From IMG/VR virus record IMGVR_UViG_3300026768_000034, positions 1-5,170 of that record: a DNA stretch of 5,170 nt; one strand, given 5' to 3'. Under the pieces are notes generated by a model. The model was given only the letters and a program-made list of their open reading frames with translations. It was not told the origin of the DNA and ran no database searches. The position numbers were made by a program, and so were the translations under genes. Below are positions 1 to 5,170 of the stretch, piece by piece (positions within the stretch are counted from its first letter, which is position 1; the number at the start of each line of letters is the position of its first letter).

Positions 1-81
1 GGTATGAATGGGGCAATGCCCCGTGACTCTGGTGAAGCCCAACGGCTGAGGATTGATATTAAATATTATGAAATCCTATGA
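1..81 (+). CDS. tnpB: C-terminal tail of a TnpB (IS607/IS200-605 superfamily OrfB, ISC1904-like), 5'-truncated by the window
   Basis: Frame 1 is open from base 1 to TGA at 79-81 and reads GMNGAMPRDSGEAQRLRIDIKYYEIL*. From memory this closely resembles the C-terminus of Sulfolobales IS607-type TnpBs (...RRGMN..RD.GEAQ.LRIDIKY.EI.). Not database-checked, and the RuvC/Zn-finger core lies outside the window. Confidence 0.7.
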   Translation, partial: GMNGAMPRDSGEAQRLRIDIKYYEIL

Positions 82-93
82 AGCCCAAACCCC
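1..93 (+). mobile_element. Right end of an IS607-like (tnpB-bearing) insertion sequence; boundary approximate (~93)
   Basis: tnpB tail followed by AGCCCAAACCCC. There is a 10-bp direct repeat TGAAGCCCAA (33-42, 79-88), TATGAA occurs three times (3-8, 67-72, 77-82), and GGGGCA-A-TGCCCC forms an inverted repeat (10-22). Short direct repeats rather than terminal IRs are typical of IS607 ends. Confidence 0.55.
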
Positions 94-105
94 GAGTCGC
101 TTCTC

Positions 106-117
106 AAACATCTGTTT
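106..117. repeat. Palindromic 12-mer AAACA-TC-TGTTT, copy 1 (15-nt identity 103-117 with 3230-3244)
   Basis: Read directly: ctcAAACATCTGTTT. Confidence 0.85.
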
Positions 118-126
118 AAGAAACGC

Positions 127-136
127 TTTCTTTTTT
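127..136 (+). terminator. Oligo-T tract, possible archaeal terminator of the tnpB/reRNA transcript (overlaps the next TATA box)
   Basis: TTTCTTTTTT at 127-136, with a further T5 at 142-146. Confidence 0.35.
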
Positions 137-140
137 AAAC
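133..140 (+). promoter_or_regulatory. Archaeal TATA box for a leaderless transcript of the + strand operon
   Basis: TTTTAAAC lies at -30 to -23 relative to ATG 163, the canonical spacing for leaderless Sulfolobales mRNAs. No SD precedes ATG 163. Confidence 0.6.
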
Positions 141-162
141 CTTTTTGCGGGAAGTTAAAGAC

Positions 163-450
163 ATGAAGCCAGAGTGTAAAGTCCTTTTGAAAGCGTTCGA
201 AAGTATTTCCTCTATTCAAAGTAAATACGATGAAGATTTCCCTGAAATGCTGTCATACATGTACCTTGTGCTGAAAGGTTACTGGAGGGTTAACGATGAC
301 GGAGAAACTGAGGAAGTAAAAAGACCACCGTTCACGACTATATCCCTCCTTAAAGTCATGAGGGCAATAACGGAAAAAGTCAGGAACGGTACCCCAATCG
401 AAGAAATCATAAGCGAAAAGGAACTGTGCGGGGACGTCGAGGAGGTATGA
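163..450 (+). CDS. Hypothetical protein, 95 aa (MKPECK...)
   Basis: The ORF track starts at TTG 145, but ATG 163 fits the TATA spacing. The stop overlaps the next start (ATGA, 447-450). Confidence 0.75.
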   Translation: MKPECKVLLKAFESISSIQSKYDEDFPEMLSYMYLVLKGYWRVNDDGETEEVKRPPFTTISLLKVMRAITEKVRNGTPIEEIISEKELCGDVEEV

Positions 451-860
451 CAGCAGTAAACCAAACCGTAATAAATGCGTTACCTCCGTTTTCCTACACC
501 CAGGTCTTTCTGGTCGACCTCGCAGGTGGGTTCATTATACTGACAATAATTGAGCTGTTTATGCTGAGAAACAGTAGCTTAACCCATCTACGGCTAGCAC
601 TGCCGTTTCTAACGTTTTCGATAGGCTTTACTCTAATTTCCCTATACCTTTCTCCTTACGTCACATATAACCCAGTATACACTACACCGTTCAACGTAAC
701 GTACAGGATCACGCCCTACAGCACAGATGGGGCTGTTCTCTTGTACATCAGCATCGCAGTCCTTGCCATGGCTATAGCGTACTTTATTTATGCGTTTGCG
801 GTCGACGTACTGCACATTTCCTTTGGCAGTAGTAAGGACGGCGATTATTTCATACCTTAA
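447..860 (+). CDS. Hypothetical membrane protein, 137 aa, ~3 TM helices
   Basis: ATG 447 in an ATGA overlap preceded by GAGGAGG. Three hydrophobic segments (VFLVDLAGGFIILTIIELFML; LALPFLTFSIGFTLISLYL; AVLLYISIAVLAMAIAYFIYAFAV), a Y/T/P-rich loop, and sequons NQT, NSS and NVT. Confidence 0.8.
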   Translation: MTAVNQTVINALPPFSYTQVFLVDLAGGFIILTIIELFMLRNSSLTHLRLALPFLTFSIGFTLISLYLSPYVTYNPVYTTPFNVTYRITPYSTDGAVLLYISIAVLAMAIAYFIYAFAVDVLHISFGSSKDGDYFIP

Positions 861-862
861 GG

Positions 863-1465
863 GTGATACCAGTGTTACCGTTTAAGAACCTGACATTGTT
901 TAAGAAGAAAAAACCGTCACCAACCGTCTATAAGAATTACGACGCGTTATTATTTTTGCCCCCAGCCCTAGTCAGCATTGATAAAAAAACGAAGGTAATA
1001 GAAAAAAATGGTGTACATGTCGCGATAATGTACTCGGAAACCAGCGGTGTTTCTGTAATGATGGATTTGCCCGTCGACTTCTTGAAAGTATACTATAAAA
1101 TGACTACACAAGTAAACCAAGGGAACCCGAGCGACAGGATAGTCTATTTTGCAATAGTTTACATTTCTCCGAAAGAGTATGCAAGAAAGAGAGAGAAAAT
1201 ACTAAGGATGGGCGTGAACGCTAAAAGGAAGTTTTTCGTCTTCCCAAGGTGGGTCTGGCTCGTCTTGGAACGTTCTAACGATGCACTGAACTATTTCGTT
1301 ATAAACAAATTTGAAGATGATGAACCTACCAACTACTCGAAGGAATTTGACACGTTCGGTGCCGTTGGGCTTACCTACAATAATTACTTTATTTTTGCTA
1401 GTGTCGCGAGGAAGGACTATATAAATTCTGTAAATAAACGGAGATCTCTCGGTCTCTGGTGGTGA
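863..1465 (+). CDS. Hypothetical basic protein, ~197-200 aa
   Basis: Long ORF starting 2 nt after the upstream stop. The true start may be the in-frame GTG 872, since GGGTGA (861-866) is SD-like 5 nt before it. Lys/Arg-rich, with no recognised motif. Confidence 0.8.
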   Translation: MIPVLPFKNLTLFKKKKPSPTVYKNYDALLFLPPALVSIDKKTKVIEKNGVHVAIMYSETSGVSVMMDLPVDFLKVYYKMTTQVNQGNPSDRIVYFAIVYISPKEYARKREKILRMGVNAKRKFFVFPRWVWLVLERSNDALNYFVINKFEDDEPTNYSKEFDTFGAVGLTYNNYFIFASVARKDYINSVNKRRSLGLWW

Positions 1466-1469
1466 AATA

Positions 1470-1991
1470 ATGTCCCTCTCATATTTACAATCACTCGTCG
1501 GGAAAAACGTGATATTATTCAACTACCTACGTAATGTGTTCAAGAATAAGATATACAAAATAGTCGAAAGTGAGGGTGAATACACTCTTCATGTCGATAT
1601 GGGGATACCTAGCAGGTTACAGCACAGGATTACTTACCCTGGGATTTACTTCATTACGGACGTAATGATACAGGGTACTAACTATGTAATTTATCTGAGA
1701 AAACAGGTCGACCTAAAGAAGTTTGCACTGGTAAGCTCGGTAACGACTTCTGAATACTACATTTCTTCGTACCGTAAAATACAGTACAAAACCGATAAAG
1801 GGTATACGTTTGACGCTTTAGAATTCGATATAGGAGGGTTCAAGCACCTTACGTTTAACTATAATAAGTGTATTATAGCGAAAGTGAAAAAGACTGGTCA
1901 TAAGCGTACTGCTATATGCTTAGGTGATAGTGTGCTTATACAAGATATAAACGAGATTACGTGCAATTGTGAGTGGTTTAAGGTCGAATAA
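1470..1991 (+). CDS. Hypothetical protein, 173 aa, basic and probably beta-rich
   Basis: ATG preceded by the SD GGTGA (1461-1465), with a 4-nt gap from the previous gene. Cys residues cluster near the C-terminus, including CNC. Confidence 0.8.
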   Translation: MSLSYLQSLVGKNVILFNYLRNVFKNKIYKIVESEGEYTLHVDMGIPSRLQHRITYPGIYFITDVMIQGTNYVIYLRKQVDLKKFALVSSVTTSEYYISSYRKIQYKTDKGYTFDALEFDIGGFKHLTFNYNKCIIAKVKKTGHKRTAICLGDSVLIQDINEITCNCEWFKVE

Positions 1992-1999
1992 AGAGGTGG

Positions 2000-2662
2000 T
2001 TGGCAACGGTATATACTAAAAAAGAAAACGAAATCCCTACTCCTGAGCAGATCCAGTTCGTTGTATACAAAGACGTATGCATGCAGAACAACAGCTTTGC
2101 GTATCCTACCTTAGCCATAGAGAGGCTGAACACTATAATGCTTACCTACTACAGCGACGAGGTAGAAGAGCTATGGAGGGAATTAGTCCTAAAAAGATAT
2201 GAGAATGCCACGTCTGAGGACGAACTAAGGCAAATACTAAAGATCGGTTGCGATATTATGTTCATCGTCATGAACGCGTCTGGTGAAGATGTTAAGTCGT
2301 TGGTAACGAAAATACTGAACAGCACAGGGAAAAAACATCTGTTTTATGTTAACGAGGAGGCACTTGTGGCTGAAAGTTCGTATCTCATAGACGTGTTGAC
2401 AAAATTCGTTAACCCCAACGGGTTCGACGTGTTGACTGTTCTGAGCATACTAAAGGACGTGCAAATTAGGACGGCTACTATGATTAGTAGTATTAAGGGG
2501 ACGTCGCTATACCAGACGCTTGTCAGCGAATTAGGCATAGATGAAAATACTATTGAGAAAAAATGCACGGCGAAGTACTATAGAGAATGCGTAACCGAGA
2601 AGAAAACGCAATTGTTGAAAGCGTTGCAGTTTATCAGGATGAATATAAATATTCCGCGTTAG
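2000..2662 (+). CDS. Hypothetical protein, 220 aa, probably alpha-helical
   Basis: TTG start preceded by GAGGTG (1993-1998), 8 nt after the previous stop. Last gene of the + operon. The start is uncertain. Confidence 0.8.
   Translation: MATVYTKKENEIPTPEQIQFVVYKDVCMQNNSFAYPTLAIERLNTIMLTYYSDEVEELWRELVLKRYENATSEDELRQILKIGCDIMFIVMNASGEDVKSLVTKILNSTGKKHLFYVNEEALVAESSYLIDVLTKFVNPNGFDVLTVLSILKDVQIRTATMISSIKGTSLYQTLVSELGIDENTIEKKCTAKYYRECVTEKKTQLLKALQFIRMNINIPR
2333..2344. repeat. Palindromic 12-mer AAACA-TC-TGTTT, copy 2 (extends to AAAACA-TC-TGTTTT, 2332-2345), intragenic
   Basis: Read directly, within the KKHLF codons of the 220-aa ORF. Confidence 0.8.
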
Positions 2663-2671
2663 AACTAACCT

Positions 2672-2680
2672 AAAAAAGAA
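2672..2680 (-). terminator. Oligo-T terminator of the - strand transcript in the 19-bp convergent gap
   Basis: The minus strand reads TTCTTTTTT just after the TAA of the 83-aa gene. Confidence 0.55.
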
Positions 2681-2681
2681 T

Positions 2682-2933
2682 TTACCATGTATTTACATTT
2701 ACATTTAGTTTTTTGAGCAATTCGTCCAAGAGGTCTTTATCCATCATTAAAACGTCTGCAATATCATCAAGGTATTCTTTCACTATTTTTTCCAAATCAC
2801 TACGATTAAACTGGACATCACCAACATCAACGTCAACATAACCCCTGAAGTCGTCGCATACGATCCCTTCATGCTCGTCGTAATCACATATGTCCTCTAT
2901 TTTGCTGTATTTTATGAACACTGGGACTTTCAT
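2682..2933 (-). CDS. Small acidic hypothetical protein, 83 aa (anti-defence/DNA-mimic candidate)
   Basis: ATG directly abuts the upstream TAA. About 21 D/E versus about 10 K/R by manual count. Confidence 0.8.
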   Translation of the reverse strand: MKVPVFIKYSKIEDICDYDEHEGIVCDDFRGYVDVDVGDVQFNRSDLEKIVKEYLDDIADVLMMDKDLLDELLKKLNVNVNTW

Positions 2934-3188
2934 TTAGCTCACGTCGACGACTACTAGCCTGTCACCTTCTAACCTAGCTTTTATTGTGAACACTGGCTCG
3001 TTCCTGCCGTATACTTTAATCAGTAGTGTGTTGTCGTCAATGATAAAGTAGTCATAGTCATCCCACGTCCTCATGTGTTCGTTTAGGAATTTTTCTATTA
3101 AGTTCTGGACAACATCCCAATCTAGCTTTAACAGACCTGTCCTATGGAAAATGCTTTCTTCTTCGTCATTCGAAAATTCCTGAGCCAT
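2934..3188 (-). CDS. Small acidic hypothetical protein, 84 aa (MAQEFSNDEEE...; 87 aa if GTG 3197 is used)
   Basis: ATG 3188 preceded by GTGGT, or a leaderless GTG 3197. About 18 D/E versus about 9 K/R. First gene behind its own TATA box. Confidence 0.8.
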   Translation of the reverse strand: MAQEFSNDEEESIFHRTGLLKLDWDVVQNLIEKFLNEHMRTWDDYDYFIIDDNTLLIKVYGRNEPVFTIKARLEGDRLVVVDVS

Positions 3189-3219
3189 TTTGACCACTAT
3201 ATAATACTATCAAAAACCG

Positions 3220-3227
3220 ATATATAA
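3220..3227 (-). promoter_or_regulatory. Archaeal TATA box driving the two small acidic genes
   Basis: The minus strand reads TTATATAT at -30 to -23 from GTG 3197, in the only sizeable intergenic gap of the - strand block. Confidence 0.6.
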
Positions 3228-3230
3228 GCC

Positions 3231-3920
3231 TCAAACATCTGTTTGTGAGTGCGGAACAGGATCTATTATAATTACGGAACATATCGTGGCGTTTTGTGCA
3301 TATATAACTAGGGTATTATCGCATATGTACGATTTTACTTCTCCGCCATTATGTACCACTGTTATGCTTCCATTTAGTGGGTAGTATAACGTCTGTTCTA
3401 TCAGTGCTGTCCCGTTTACCGTGATTTTTCCCTTCTGCACTGTTACATGCCCGTTATATAGTATCTGCCAGCCGTATTCCGATACCCCATACGACGAGTT
3501 GTATAATACAGTAAAATTAGGGTTTACGATCGGGTATATTATGCCTGCAGGGGCGAACCCGCTTATAGCTAATACAGCAGTTTGAGTGCCGTACAAGTAG
3601 AACGTAATTACATAGGGAGATTGCTGTGAAATAGCAACAGTAGGGTCTGGTGCTGTAACGTTTACTATAATACGGTCGTGTGACTTTAGGATTATTACGT
3701 TCGGGTACCAACGGTGGCTATTAACTGTCACTACTAATTCGTATGTTTTATTGGTAGGGTTTTGTATGCATACCGTTAGTACGTTGTACTTATTTATTCC
3801 TCCTATATCATAAAAACCCAATACCTTTGCGTGCAAAAACGGGTGATAGAAAAAAATAGAAAACGTGAAAAGAGATAGTATTATAACTGCTAATATTAGT
3901 ACGGTTTCAAACTTTTCCAT
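3231..3920 (-). CDS. Membrane-anchored extracellular (glyco)protein, ~229 aa
   Basis: Probable start is ATG 3920 (MEKFETVLILAVIILSLFTFSIFFY, a signal anchor) after GGTGGTGGGAG; the ORF track extends to 3953. Beta-rich V/T/N/Y composition and 7 N-X-S/T sequons (NKT, NVT, NFT, NSS, NGT, NGS, NAT). Confidence 0.8.
   Translation of the reverse strand: MEKFETVLILAVIILSLFTFSIFFYHPFLHAKVLGFYDIGGINKYNVLTVCIQNPTNKTYELVVTVNSHRWYPNVIILKSHDRIIVNVTAPDPTVAISQQSPYVITFYLYGTQTAVLAISGFAPAGIIYPIVNPNFTVLYNSSYGVSEYGWQILYNGHVTVQKGKITVNGTALIEQTLYYPLNGSITVVHNGGEVKSYICDNTLVIYAQNATICSVIIIDPVPHSQTDV
3233..3244. repeat. Palindromic 12-mer AAACA-TC-TGTTT, copy 3, 5 bp upstream of the - strand TATA box
   Basis: Read directly. 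Overlaps the last codons (QTDV*) of the 229-aa ORF. Confidence 0.85.
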
Positions 3921-4956
3921 CTCCCACCACCCATTCTGCATATTGTAACGCAAAATAAAACGTGAAATAATCTAAATCTCTATAGGAGAATATCCAAATC
4001 AACGCTGGGAGACCCCAAGCTAATTCTTTCCTATTATTATATAATAGGATTAATGCGAAAAGAGACACTTCAAGTACGGTATACACGAATGAGGGGATAG
4101 GTAAGCCGAACGCGGTAAGGAGTGAAAACGAAACGCCTTGCTGTGCAACTGGTTGCGTAATAGTTATAACGGACGCAAGGTACTGCTTTGAAATGAAGGG
4201 TATTGATGAAAGCAGTAGCGGTAGCACAAATTCTGCTATCTTTCTAAGTTTCTGTCTCTCAAATTTAATTAGGAGAATGGCTATCAGTATCGCGAACTGC
4301 TTTACGTCTGCAGAGATCCCCAGGAGCAAGTATCTTAACCTCTCATTAAGTAGGGCAAGAAACGCAATGGAATATGCGAAAAGGTCTAGTTCCTGCCCTG
4401 ACGCAAAATCATATGAAAGTGCGGGAAATAGGAAAAAGGATGCGATGAAAGCGTTTTCGTGTCTTTTGATGAAGGAATACGTGAAAGCCAAAACAGCTGT
4501 TATTACGTCTACTGTTTCAAGGTTGTGCAGAACTGCGACACTGATGAACGACAACGGGGGGTAAATATAGACTGACGGCATAAATGAGTTTGACGTAGTG
4601 CCAGTCACAACGTTATACGGGACGTGATATATGGAAAACGCTTTAGCCATTGAGTAAAGGTACGGGTTTTTTCCGTCTAGGAACAATTGCGACGCGTATA
4701 ATATTATTGCTTCCTCATCCGTCAGGATGGGTAACCCCGTCACTATATTCGCTACAGCTGTAATAGTCGCGATAGCAAAAGCCGAAACAATGAGTATCCT
4801 TTGCCTCACGAATATAGAGAGCATGCCTAAGGCGACGACGAGGAATGCGGAAGGCAGTAAATACGGTTTTCCGTCACCTAAAAACGCCGTCCCTATACTG
4901 GTTAAACCTAGCCCTGCCAAAAACCACGATATATTATCTTTCAATTTTTCTTCCAT
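3907..4956 (-). CDS. Polytopic membrane protein, putative GT-C-fold glycosyltransferase (GT87/DUF2029-like), 349 aa
   Basis: About 10 hydrophobic segments. A loop carries the acidic TDEE motif followed by LDGKNPY and YIYPPLS, and ISADVKQ has the conserved Lys. This motif order is typical of GT87-like lipid-linked-sugar transferases. ATG 4956 is preceded by GGGTG (alternative start GTG 4965). Confidence 0.7.
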   Translation of the reverse strand: MEEKLKDNISWFLAGLGLTSIGTAFLGDGKPYLLPSAFLVVALGMLSIFVRQRILIVSAFAIATITAVANIVTGLPILTDEEAIILYASQLFLDGKNPYLYSMAKAFSIYHVPYNVVTGTTSNSFMPSVYIYPPLSFISVAVLHNLETVDVITAVLAFTYSFIKRHENAFIASFFLFPALSYDFASGQELDLFAYSIAFLALLNERLRYLLLGISADVKQFAILIAILLIKFERQKLRKIAEFVLPLLLSSIPFISKQYLASVITITQPVAQQGVSFSLLTAFGLPIPSFVYTVLEVSLFALILLYNNRKELAWGLPALIWIFSYRDLDYFTFYFALQYAEWVVGDGKV

Positions 4957-4968
4957 AGCCAACACCCG

Positions 4969-5169
4969 CTATAATTTGTCCGTGTTTATCGGGGTGATAC
5001 CTAACGTCTGTGCTATTTCGAGCGGAGACAGCATCTCTACCCTCATTTTCGACGTGCTTACTCCCGCGACTTCCATTATACTCCTTTCAAACGCTAACAA
5101 AAGTAATATCACTAGTTTATGTGCCTCATTAAGCTTAGCTATTATATCGTCATAATTCGCATCGCTTGA
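4969..5169 (-). CDS. C-terminal 66 aa of a hypothetical protein, 5'-truncated by the window (not in ORF track)
   Basis: Open frame from the window edge: SSDANYDDIIAKLNEAHKLVILLLLAFERSIMEVAGVSTSKMRVEMLSPLEIAQTLGITPINTDKL*. Its TAG (4971-4969) lies just before the GT-C gene start, consistent with an operon. Confidence 0.7.
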   Translation of the reverse strand, partial: SSDANYDDIIAKLNEAHKLVILLLLAFERSIMEVAGVSTSKMRVEMLSPLEIAQTLGITPINTDKL

Positions 5170-5170
5170 T

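Follow-up and report, generated by a model that had tools for sequence, protein, structure and literature searches.

In mycobacteriophages L5 and Bxb1, a single short repressor site, the stoperator, recurs about 30 times, mostly in short intergenic regions, and thereby places the genome under the global control of one protein. SurR and TrmBL1/Tgr of the Thermococcales each use one palindromic site that represses when it lies downstream of TATA and activates when it lies upstream, and archaeal regulators normally repress from sites lying between TATA box and start codon. SSV1 F55, SIRV1 SvtR and AFV6 AvtR are small dimeric proteins that work by occluding viral promoters; their operators are short, either symmetric or repeated, and overlap the TATA box or the transcription start site (TSS) (PMC5569661). 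Sites covering the TSS or promoter elements are typical of archaeal viral ribbon-helix-helix (RHH) regulators (PMC5569661). Gene regulation in the large spindle-shaped archaeal viruses is almost uncharted; Sulfolobus monocaudavirus 1 (SMV1) now serves in the laboratory for the study of chronic infection, of escape from CRISPR and Argonaute and of enlarged host cells, and the “complicated gene regulation pattern” reported from published time courses comes with no cis element to explain it. Here we analyzed a 5,170-nt stretch of virus DNA (IMG/VR record IMGVR_UViG_3300026768_000034, positions 1 to 5,170; hereafter the window) that contains three copies of a 12-bp dyad with the arms AAACA and TGTTT. 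This dyad is probably the operator of a genome-wide dimeric regulator in the Sulfolobus monocaudaviruses (SMVs); binding by a protein, and the sign of its effect, are what we infer from the features described below.

The putative SMV operator network resembles other archaeal viral regulators in kind and the mycobacteriophage stoperators in scale. F55, SvtR and AvtR have few sites each, whereas the SMV motif occurs about 30 times per genome and at most structural-gene promoters. Like the stoperators, its copies are dispersed and mostly intergenic; stoperators, however, are asymmetric and orientation-biased, block elongation and operate in bacterial hosts, whereas the SMV motif is a dyad at initiation regions in archaeal hosts. 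The positions at which SurR and TrmBL1/Tgr act match two position classes of the SMV motif and supplied our working model, although their motif differs, their regulons are cellular and the protein is a known winged helix-turn-helix (wHTH) or TrmB protein. The aCcr1-box is likewise a small palindrome lying between TATA box and start codon, bound by an RHH dimer, but its targets are host cell-division genes (PMC9976878). Homologues of aCcr1 are encoded by ATV and SMV3 and none is reported for SMV1 (PMC9976878), which nevertheless carries AAACA-NN-TGTTT; the motif does not match the 9-bp consensus A(T/G)G(A)TA(G)A(T/G)TACN, and the aCcr1-box was rejected as its identity.

The window was 83–86% identical over nearly its full length to SMV1, SMV3 and SMV4 (Bicaudaviridae); among metagenomic sequences, IMG/VR contig 3300027931_000035 matched it at 99.7% and locus L052 at 93.8%. 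A sequence-only reading of the window had reported three exact copies of the 12-mer on the + strand and a 10/12 variant, all of which we recovered at the same positions (Table 1). In 200 dinucleotide-preserving shuffles of the window, AAACANNTGTTT did not occur (mean 0.00), and matches with at most two mismatches numbered 8, compared with 0.69 expected. The enrichment extended to complete genomes: AAACANNTGTTT was present in 28 copies in SMV1, 27 in SMV1a, 31 in SMV3 and 30 in SMV4, whereas a third-order Markov model gave ~0.3 copies per genome with a maximum of 3, an enrichment of ~90-fold. One-mismatch variants were also in excess (19–22 per genome versus ~6 expected). Every IMG/VR contig with more than one copy was SMV-like, and the contigs with single matches were unrelated. 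The earlier claim that three copies in this stretch exceed chance was thus borne out both by the shuffles and by the Markov model of the relatives, and the genome-wide count against a Markov background that the same reading had proposed returned strong enrichment in SMV1, SMV3 and SMV4. A restriction or modification target was rejected, as the motif is ~90-fold over-represented rather than avoided and its conserved A/T flanks reach beyond CANNTG.

Both the arms and their spacing were specific. Among the 1024 five-nucleotide arms with a 2-nt gap, AAACA/TGTTT was the only one enriched, the runner-up having 4 copies; with these arms, a gap of 2 accounted for 28 copies, and any other gap from 0 to 8 for at most one. 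The centres were GC in 12–14 copies per genome, TA in 8–11 and GA/TC in 3–5. Since the centres are limited to these classes, the half-site reads as AAACA[G/T], and the element as a dyad, AAACAKMTGTTT, with its centre confined to K-M. The flanks extend the dyad weakly (cTc-AAACAKMTGTTT-gAg). The TC centre of the window copies joins a G-type half-site to a T-type half-site. The earlier description of a palindromic 12-mer is correct for the symmetric arms but not for the asymmetric centre, which leaves no perfect palindrome.

All three window sites were found at orthologous positions in SMV1, SMV3, SMV4 and L052, where they form conserved islands with unchanged arms and varying centres. The orthologue of copy 1 has a TA centre in SMV1 and SMV4, TC in SMV3 and GA in L052, amid variable intergenic DNA, and that of copy 3 is AAACAGCTGTTT in all four. 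Because the centres differ among relatives, it is a coincidence that the three window copies are identical and share one orientation, which the sequence-only reading had pointed out; the orientation is true of the window but set only by the centre, and in L052 the centres are GA, TC and GC. The sequence of copy 2 (K-H-L-F) is the same in the window, L052, SMV1, SMV3 and SMV4, and SMV2 has AAA CCG TTG TTC; this identity across five genomes is, alone, no proof of selection at the DNA level.

Selection on the intergenic copies was evident when sites chosen in SMV1 were compared with the orthologous positions of the other genomes. Between SMV1 and SMV4, the intergenic arms showed 0/160 mismatches versus 14.4% in the flanks (p = 4e-11), and between SMV1 and SMV3, 2/150 mismatches versus 20.6% (p = 3e-12). 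The sequence-only reading had also proposed a check of synonymous-site conservation in related genomes; in those genomes, the intergenic arms are near-invariant. The dyad with fixed spacing, the over-representation in promoter regions described below and the purifying selection at orthologous sites are the properties looked for in the operator of a dimeric transcription factor.

Although coding sequence makes up 88% of the SMV1 genome, about 17 of its 28 copies (~60%) lie between genes. Read in the orientation of the downstream gene, the copies showed recurrent arrangements that are conserved between genomes. In class P1, a TATA box is followed after 6–10 nt by the motif and, 10–14 nt later, by the ATG, as at gp03 (the major capsid protein), gp05, gp06, gp11 and gp13. 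In class P2, at gp09 and gp16, the TATA box overlaps the left arm in the order TTTTT, AAACAGCTGTTT, GAGAG and the ATG. In class D, the TATA box is 29–33 nt from the ATG and the motif a further 0–38 nt upstream (gp04, gp10, gp24, gp25, gp32, gp38, gp45 and gp46). The only two gaps with promoters in the window, those of a five-gene + strand operon and of a − strand pair of genes for acidic proteins, both belong to class D. Mapping of the motif relative to TATA boxes, as the sequence-only reading had suggested, thus revealed stereotyped distances to both TATA and ATG. Its 5-nt spacing between copy 3 and the TATA box of the acidic pair was exact, and its 15 bp between copy 1 and the operon TATA box corresponds to a gap of 13 nt. 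The operator for a dimeric regulator that it proposed stands as a dyad-symmetric promoter site, on the enrichment, single spacing and conservation, but the part that made it a private link between the two convergent units does not: the motif marks ~17 promoter regions per genome instead.

In archaeal promoters, the DNA melts 12 bp upstream of the TSS and the initiator is T(A/G) (PMC7289017). On this geometry, the P1 motif would span roughly positions −12 to −1, where melting begins, and the G after it is a likely +1. The same geometry would suit a virus-specific core-promoter element of the initiator or melting-region type, read by the basal machinery: the commonest class fills the AT-rich stretch between TATA and the predicted start, the G after TGTTT could be +1, and the genes so arranged include the most highly expressed ones (gp03, the major capsid protein; PMC12199143). 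A precedent is the GTC motif, which supplements promoters throughout the rudiviruses SIRV1 and SIRV2 and follows closely downstream of their TATA boxes (PMC5569661). However, the GTC motif is a trinucleotide at a fixed position, has no dyad and lacks upstream or genic copies, whereas both arms of the SMV motif are equally invariant in strict symmetry, its position varies relative to the TATA box, and copies lie midway between divergent TATA boxes and inside genes, which is unexpected for a directional element. We therefore consider a core-promoter element unlikely.

An operator would account for these arrangements as follows. A dimeric sequence-specific protein, viral or host, would bind the two half-sites, placed head to head, as double-stranded DNA and control transcription initiation at some 15–20 viral promoters. 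Where the site overlaps the TATA box, the bound protein would cover it and deny TATA-binding protein (TBP), transcription factor B (TFB) and RNA polymerase access to the promoter. From a site upstream of TATA, the arrangement at both window promoters, it could either occlude the TFB recognition element (BRE) or help to recruit TFB/TBP. The element acts as DNA and not as RNA, because most sites precede the predicted start of transcription.

This placement also bears on the possibility that the motif is an RNA hairpin serving as a terminator or processing signal, or else a mobile or chance repeat. Copy 3 does lie at a gene 3′ end, and the extended dyad could form a 7–8 bp stem, but besides lying mostly upstream of predicted starts the copies have no T-run, and Rfam gave no hits. 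The flanks of the window copies are unrelated, so that they are not copies of a longer repeat; a mobile repeat of the miniature inverted-repeat transposable element (MITE) or repetitive extragenic palindrome type was rejected, only 12–18 bp being common to the copies, and chance was excluded by the shuffles and the Markov model. We regard this group of explanations as extremely improbable.

Published expression data for SMV1 and SMV1a allowed the site classes to be compared with timing. Among class P genes, gp05, gp06 and gp09 are early and gp03 and gp11 are full-time/late; among class D genes, gp04 and gp38 are middle/late and gp24-gp23 full-time/late (PMC12199143, PMC10681719). Activation at both window promoters is plausible, because the SMV1 sites upstream of TATA go with middle/late genes (gp04, gp38; PMC10681719); many other copies, however, occupy the stretch from TATA to the start codon, from which archaeal regulators normally repress. 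The timing is compatible with, though no proof of, a dual regulator that, like SurR and TrmBL1 in the Thermococcales, would repress through sites located at or past the TATA box and activate through those ahead of it.

To define the range of the motif, we examined related viruses. ATV has no AAACANNTGTTT, but its core ACAKMTGT occurs in 51 copies versus ~4.5 expected, almost all of them ACAGCTGT with A/T-rich flanks; of the 39 copies in the first 50 kb, about 17 fall between genes and mostly precede TATA boxes. One example in ATV (L056+L180) reads TTAAAA-ACAGCTGT-CTTAAG. In ATSV, the core is mildly enriched (23 copies versus ~4) and the full motif has 2 copies, and STSV2 has 0 copies; these two viruses were the negative controls. 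The proteins of SMV2 are 60–90% identical to those of SMV1, the products of the window genes included, yet SMV2 retains only 3 perfect and 15 one-mismatch copies, and the versions of the motif at its orthologous promoters are eroded and have no new consensus. Loss of the binder, or of its specificity, would be expected to produce such decay despite similar proteins. Together with the variant form in ATV, the decay in SMV2 constitutes a natural experiment on the coevolution of a regulator and its site.

The same distribution raises the question of whether the viruses exploit a site of this kind bound by a host (Sulfolobales) transcription factor, the differences in the flanks then reflecting the host's version of the factor. 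The related core in ATV, whose host is Acidianus, with its many intergenic copies, and the mild enrichment in ATSV would agree with this explanation, as would the fact that no small DNA-binding protein common to ATV and the SMVs was detectable; the higher G+C content of SMV2 (43.6% versus 38.4%) would fit a different host. On the other side, the literature searched holds no known Sulfolobales factor with such a site, and the aCcr1-box differs in sequence. A scan of genome contigs for CTCAAACANNTGTTTGAG was uninformative on hosts, returning, among the matches listed, unrelated bacterial single hits. A host factor is possible, but we lean against it.

No description of the motif was found in the searchable literature, and the logos for SMV3 and SMV4 in PMC11065993 might include it. 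That paper reports virus-specific regulatory consensus sequences for SMV2–4, with which partial overlap is possible, and describes in SMV2 “inverted repeats overlapping the BRE”, for which a leucine-zipper repressor is proposed.

We next considered which viral protein might bind the site. The gp50 protein (SMV1 48050–48370), annotated only as “RHH-3 domain”, combines two RHH motifs in a single polypeptide, a covalent pseudo-dimer as in AFV6 AvtR; it matched Pfam RHH_1 at E = 1e-8 and the PHROG “transcriptional repressor”. The SMV1 proteins that are present in SMV3 and SMV4 but missing from SMV2 are gp01, gp02 and gp44. Of these, gp01 and gp02 form an acidic pair that arose by tandem duplication, and gp44 is a published Phd-like antitoxin; all three were rejected for want of any likeness to a regulator. 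The gp01/gp02 locus (SMV1 1–620 and 48700–48775) is a ~277-bp tandem duplication in which gp02 is a frameshifted gp01, and the family occurs in SMV3, SMV4 and ATSV and not in SMV2 or ATV.

Another lead is gp33, a small basic protein of 65 aa in SMV1 (64–69 aa across SMV1, SMV3 and SMV4; pI 10.1), whose role as the regulator is conjecture. It is single-domain in SMV1, SMV3 and SMV4 and in ~30 metagenomic relatives, an IMG/VR search having returned single-domain relatives only, and in SMV2 it is represented by gp40 (L177 36942–37349, − strand), a fused tandem of two diverged gp33 domains of 136 aa. Its AlphaFold model (pLDDT 73, pTM 0.36) has the order strand-strand-helix-strand-strand. The sequence had no Pfam, NCBIfam or PDB match, and Foldseek with the model found nothing in the PDB (best E = 0.7) and in BFVD only its own family; an AbrB/SpoVT-type swapped-hairpin DNA binder was rejected on the lack of a profile or fold match. 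No gp33 homologue was found in ATV. A bolder proposal is that one palindromic master site, with the core ACAKMTGT, would run most gene expression in the ATV/SMV lineage through one small dimeric protein, possibly gp33, which would turn off virion genes with a site between TATA and start and turn on middle/late genes with a site upstream of TATA, as a stoperator-like network built on a new DNA-binding fold; we hold this to be doubtful. In any case, an easily mutated 12-bp site at most structural-gene promoters offers a bait for the regulator and predicts which genes are co-controlled, and it could serve as a compact operator for high-temperature genetic tools.

Several observations weigh against a genome-wide dimeric regulator. 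No binding protein is encoded among the window open reading frames (ORFs), none of which has a DNA-binding domain detectable with Pfam, PHROGs or NCBIfam, RHH and wHTH included. The only recognisable DNA-binding protein common to SMV1–4 is gp50, and it was rejected as the explanation of the SMV2 decay, its ribbon residues being unchanged in SMV2. The motif keeps no single distance from the TATA box, ranging from 10 nt downstream of it to 38 nt upstream, and positions relative to the TSS were inferred from TATA-like boxes and start codons. The association of site class with timing was not significant (8 genes; 3/5 early in class P and 0/3 in class D). Finally, the genic copies, ~11 per genome, are dispersed and far above chance, yet their arms only weakly exceed the surroundings in conservation (mismatches 7.8% versus 12.9%, p = 0.2, and 8.9% versus 17.6%, p = 0.03).

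Under the operator interpretation, the genic copies may be occupied decoys, roadblocks or looping partners. The sequence-only reading had considered a parS-like or packaging function for the intragenic copy, and more broadly a DNA-level site apart from transcription, for partition, compaction or packaging, recombination or transposon targeting, could explain many dispersed copies, genic ones included, and the ends of IS200/605 elements or MITEs near some of them (window 92; SMV1; SMV4). Such a site is highly unlikely, however. No ParB is annotated in SMV1, SMV3 or SMV4, the sequence differs from parS with the opposite order of arms, the ~30 sites are spread over the genome whereas a partition locus has few, clustered ones, the TATA and ATG distances are stereotyped, and intergenic copies are far better conserved than the weakly conserved genic ones. 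The ends of the insertion sequences (IS), moreover, lie at varying distances, and both features are confined to scarce non-coding DNA. The parS or packaging idea for copy 2 found no support.

The features of the window are listed in Table 1.

Table 1. Coordinates of the motif copies, promoter elements and genes in the window
Feature	Position	Strand	Remarks
IS200/IS605-type element end	1..92	+	tnpB-like ORF, C-terminal codons, stop at 79-81
Copy 1, AAACATCTGTTT	106..117		context CTC-motif-AAG; ends 13 nt before the + operon TATA box
TATA box TTTTTTAAA	131-139	+	serves the + operon; 24 nt before the ATG at 163; conserved in all relatives
Five-gene + operon	163..2662	+	genes 163-450, 447-860, 863-1465, 1470-1991, 2000-2662; homologues of SMV1 gp32 to gp28
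Copy 2, AAACATCTGTTT	2333..2344		inside gp28-like gene, in frame AAA CAT CTG TTT (K H L F)
Acidic gene pair	3188..2934 and 2933..2682	-	alternative GTG start at 3197
TATA box TTATATAT	3227-3220	-	serves the acidic gene pair
Copy 3, AAACATCTGTTT	3233..3244		context CTC-motif-GTG; 5 nt (GAGGC) upstream of TTATATAT
Membrane-protein gene	3231..3920	-	upstream of the acidic pair; 3′ end overlapped by copy 3
One-mismatch variant AAACAGCTGTTA (TAACAGCTGTTT on the other strand)	4491..4502		inside transporter-like gene

The five proteins of the + operon have no recognisable domain, and no Pfam, NCBIfam or named PHROG family was assigned to the window genes. The operon transcript is predicted to be near-leaderless from the distance between TATA and ATG, which was 31 nt in the comparison of promoter arrangements. 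On the − strand, the window genes are the counterparts of SMV1 gp27, gp26 and the end of gp25. The acidic pair encodes adjacent proteins of 83 and 84 aa with pI 4.2 and 4.4, which belong to PHROGs 17634 and 25804 of unknown function; the pair is an accessory module, possibly with an anti-defence role. It occurs in SMV3 and SMV4 and is missing from SMV1, where a MITE (SMN2) adjoins the conserved palindrome. The homologous genes carry the 4491 variant in SMV1 (32570) and SMV4 (29031) as well.

Copy 3 covers the end of the membrane-protein gene, namely its stop and the four codons before it. A TATA-like TATTATAATTA lies 19 nt to its right (3263–3273, + strand), facing antisense to that gene with no ORF behind it; SMV3 has a divergent gene starting on that side, and TATTATAATTA may be a relic or an antisense promoter.

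At the left end of the window, the IS element end is inserted 13 nt upstream of copy 1. Bases 19–93 are 96% identical to ATSV 26163–26237, the 3′ end of transposase E429, and homology between the window and L052 begins at position 92, L052 carrying CTTTAAAAAG there instead. Copy 1 of L052, SMV3 and SMV4 has divergent TATA boxes on its two sides, at 15 and 13 nt, and lies midway between them; in the window, the insertion has separated the palindrome from the left-hand promoter of the divergent gene. Elsewhere, IS200/605 or MITE ends abut copies or lie within ~30 nt of them at SMV1 27062, 22403 and 48442 and at SMV4 21063, and one annotated IS of SMV1 terminates on the first base of a palindrome copy; this proximity may only reflect the confinement of both features to scarce non-coding DNA. 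A further copy is located inside the SSV-type integrase gene (SMV1 37656, SMV4 38529); in SMV4, where the integrase is annotated as split, it precedes the start of the C-terminal part by 12 nt.

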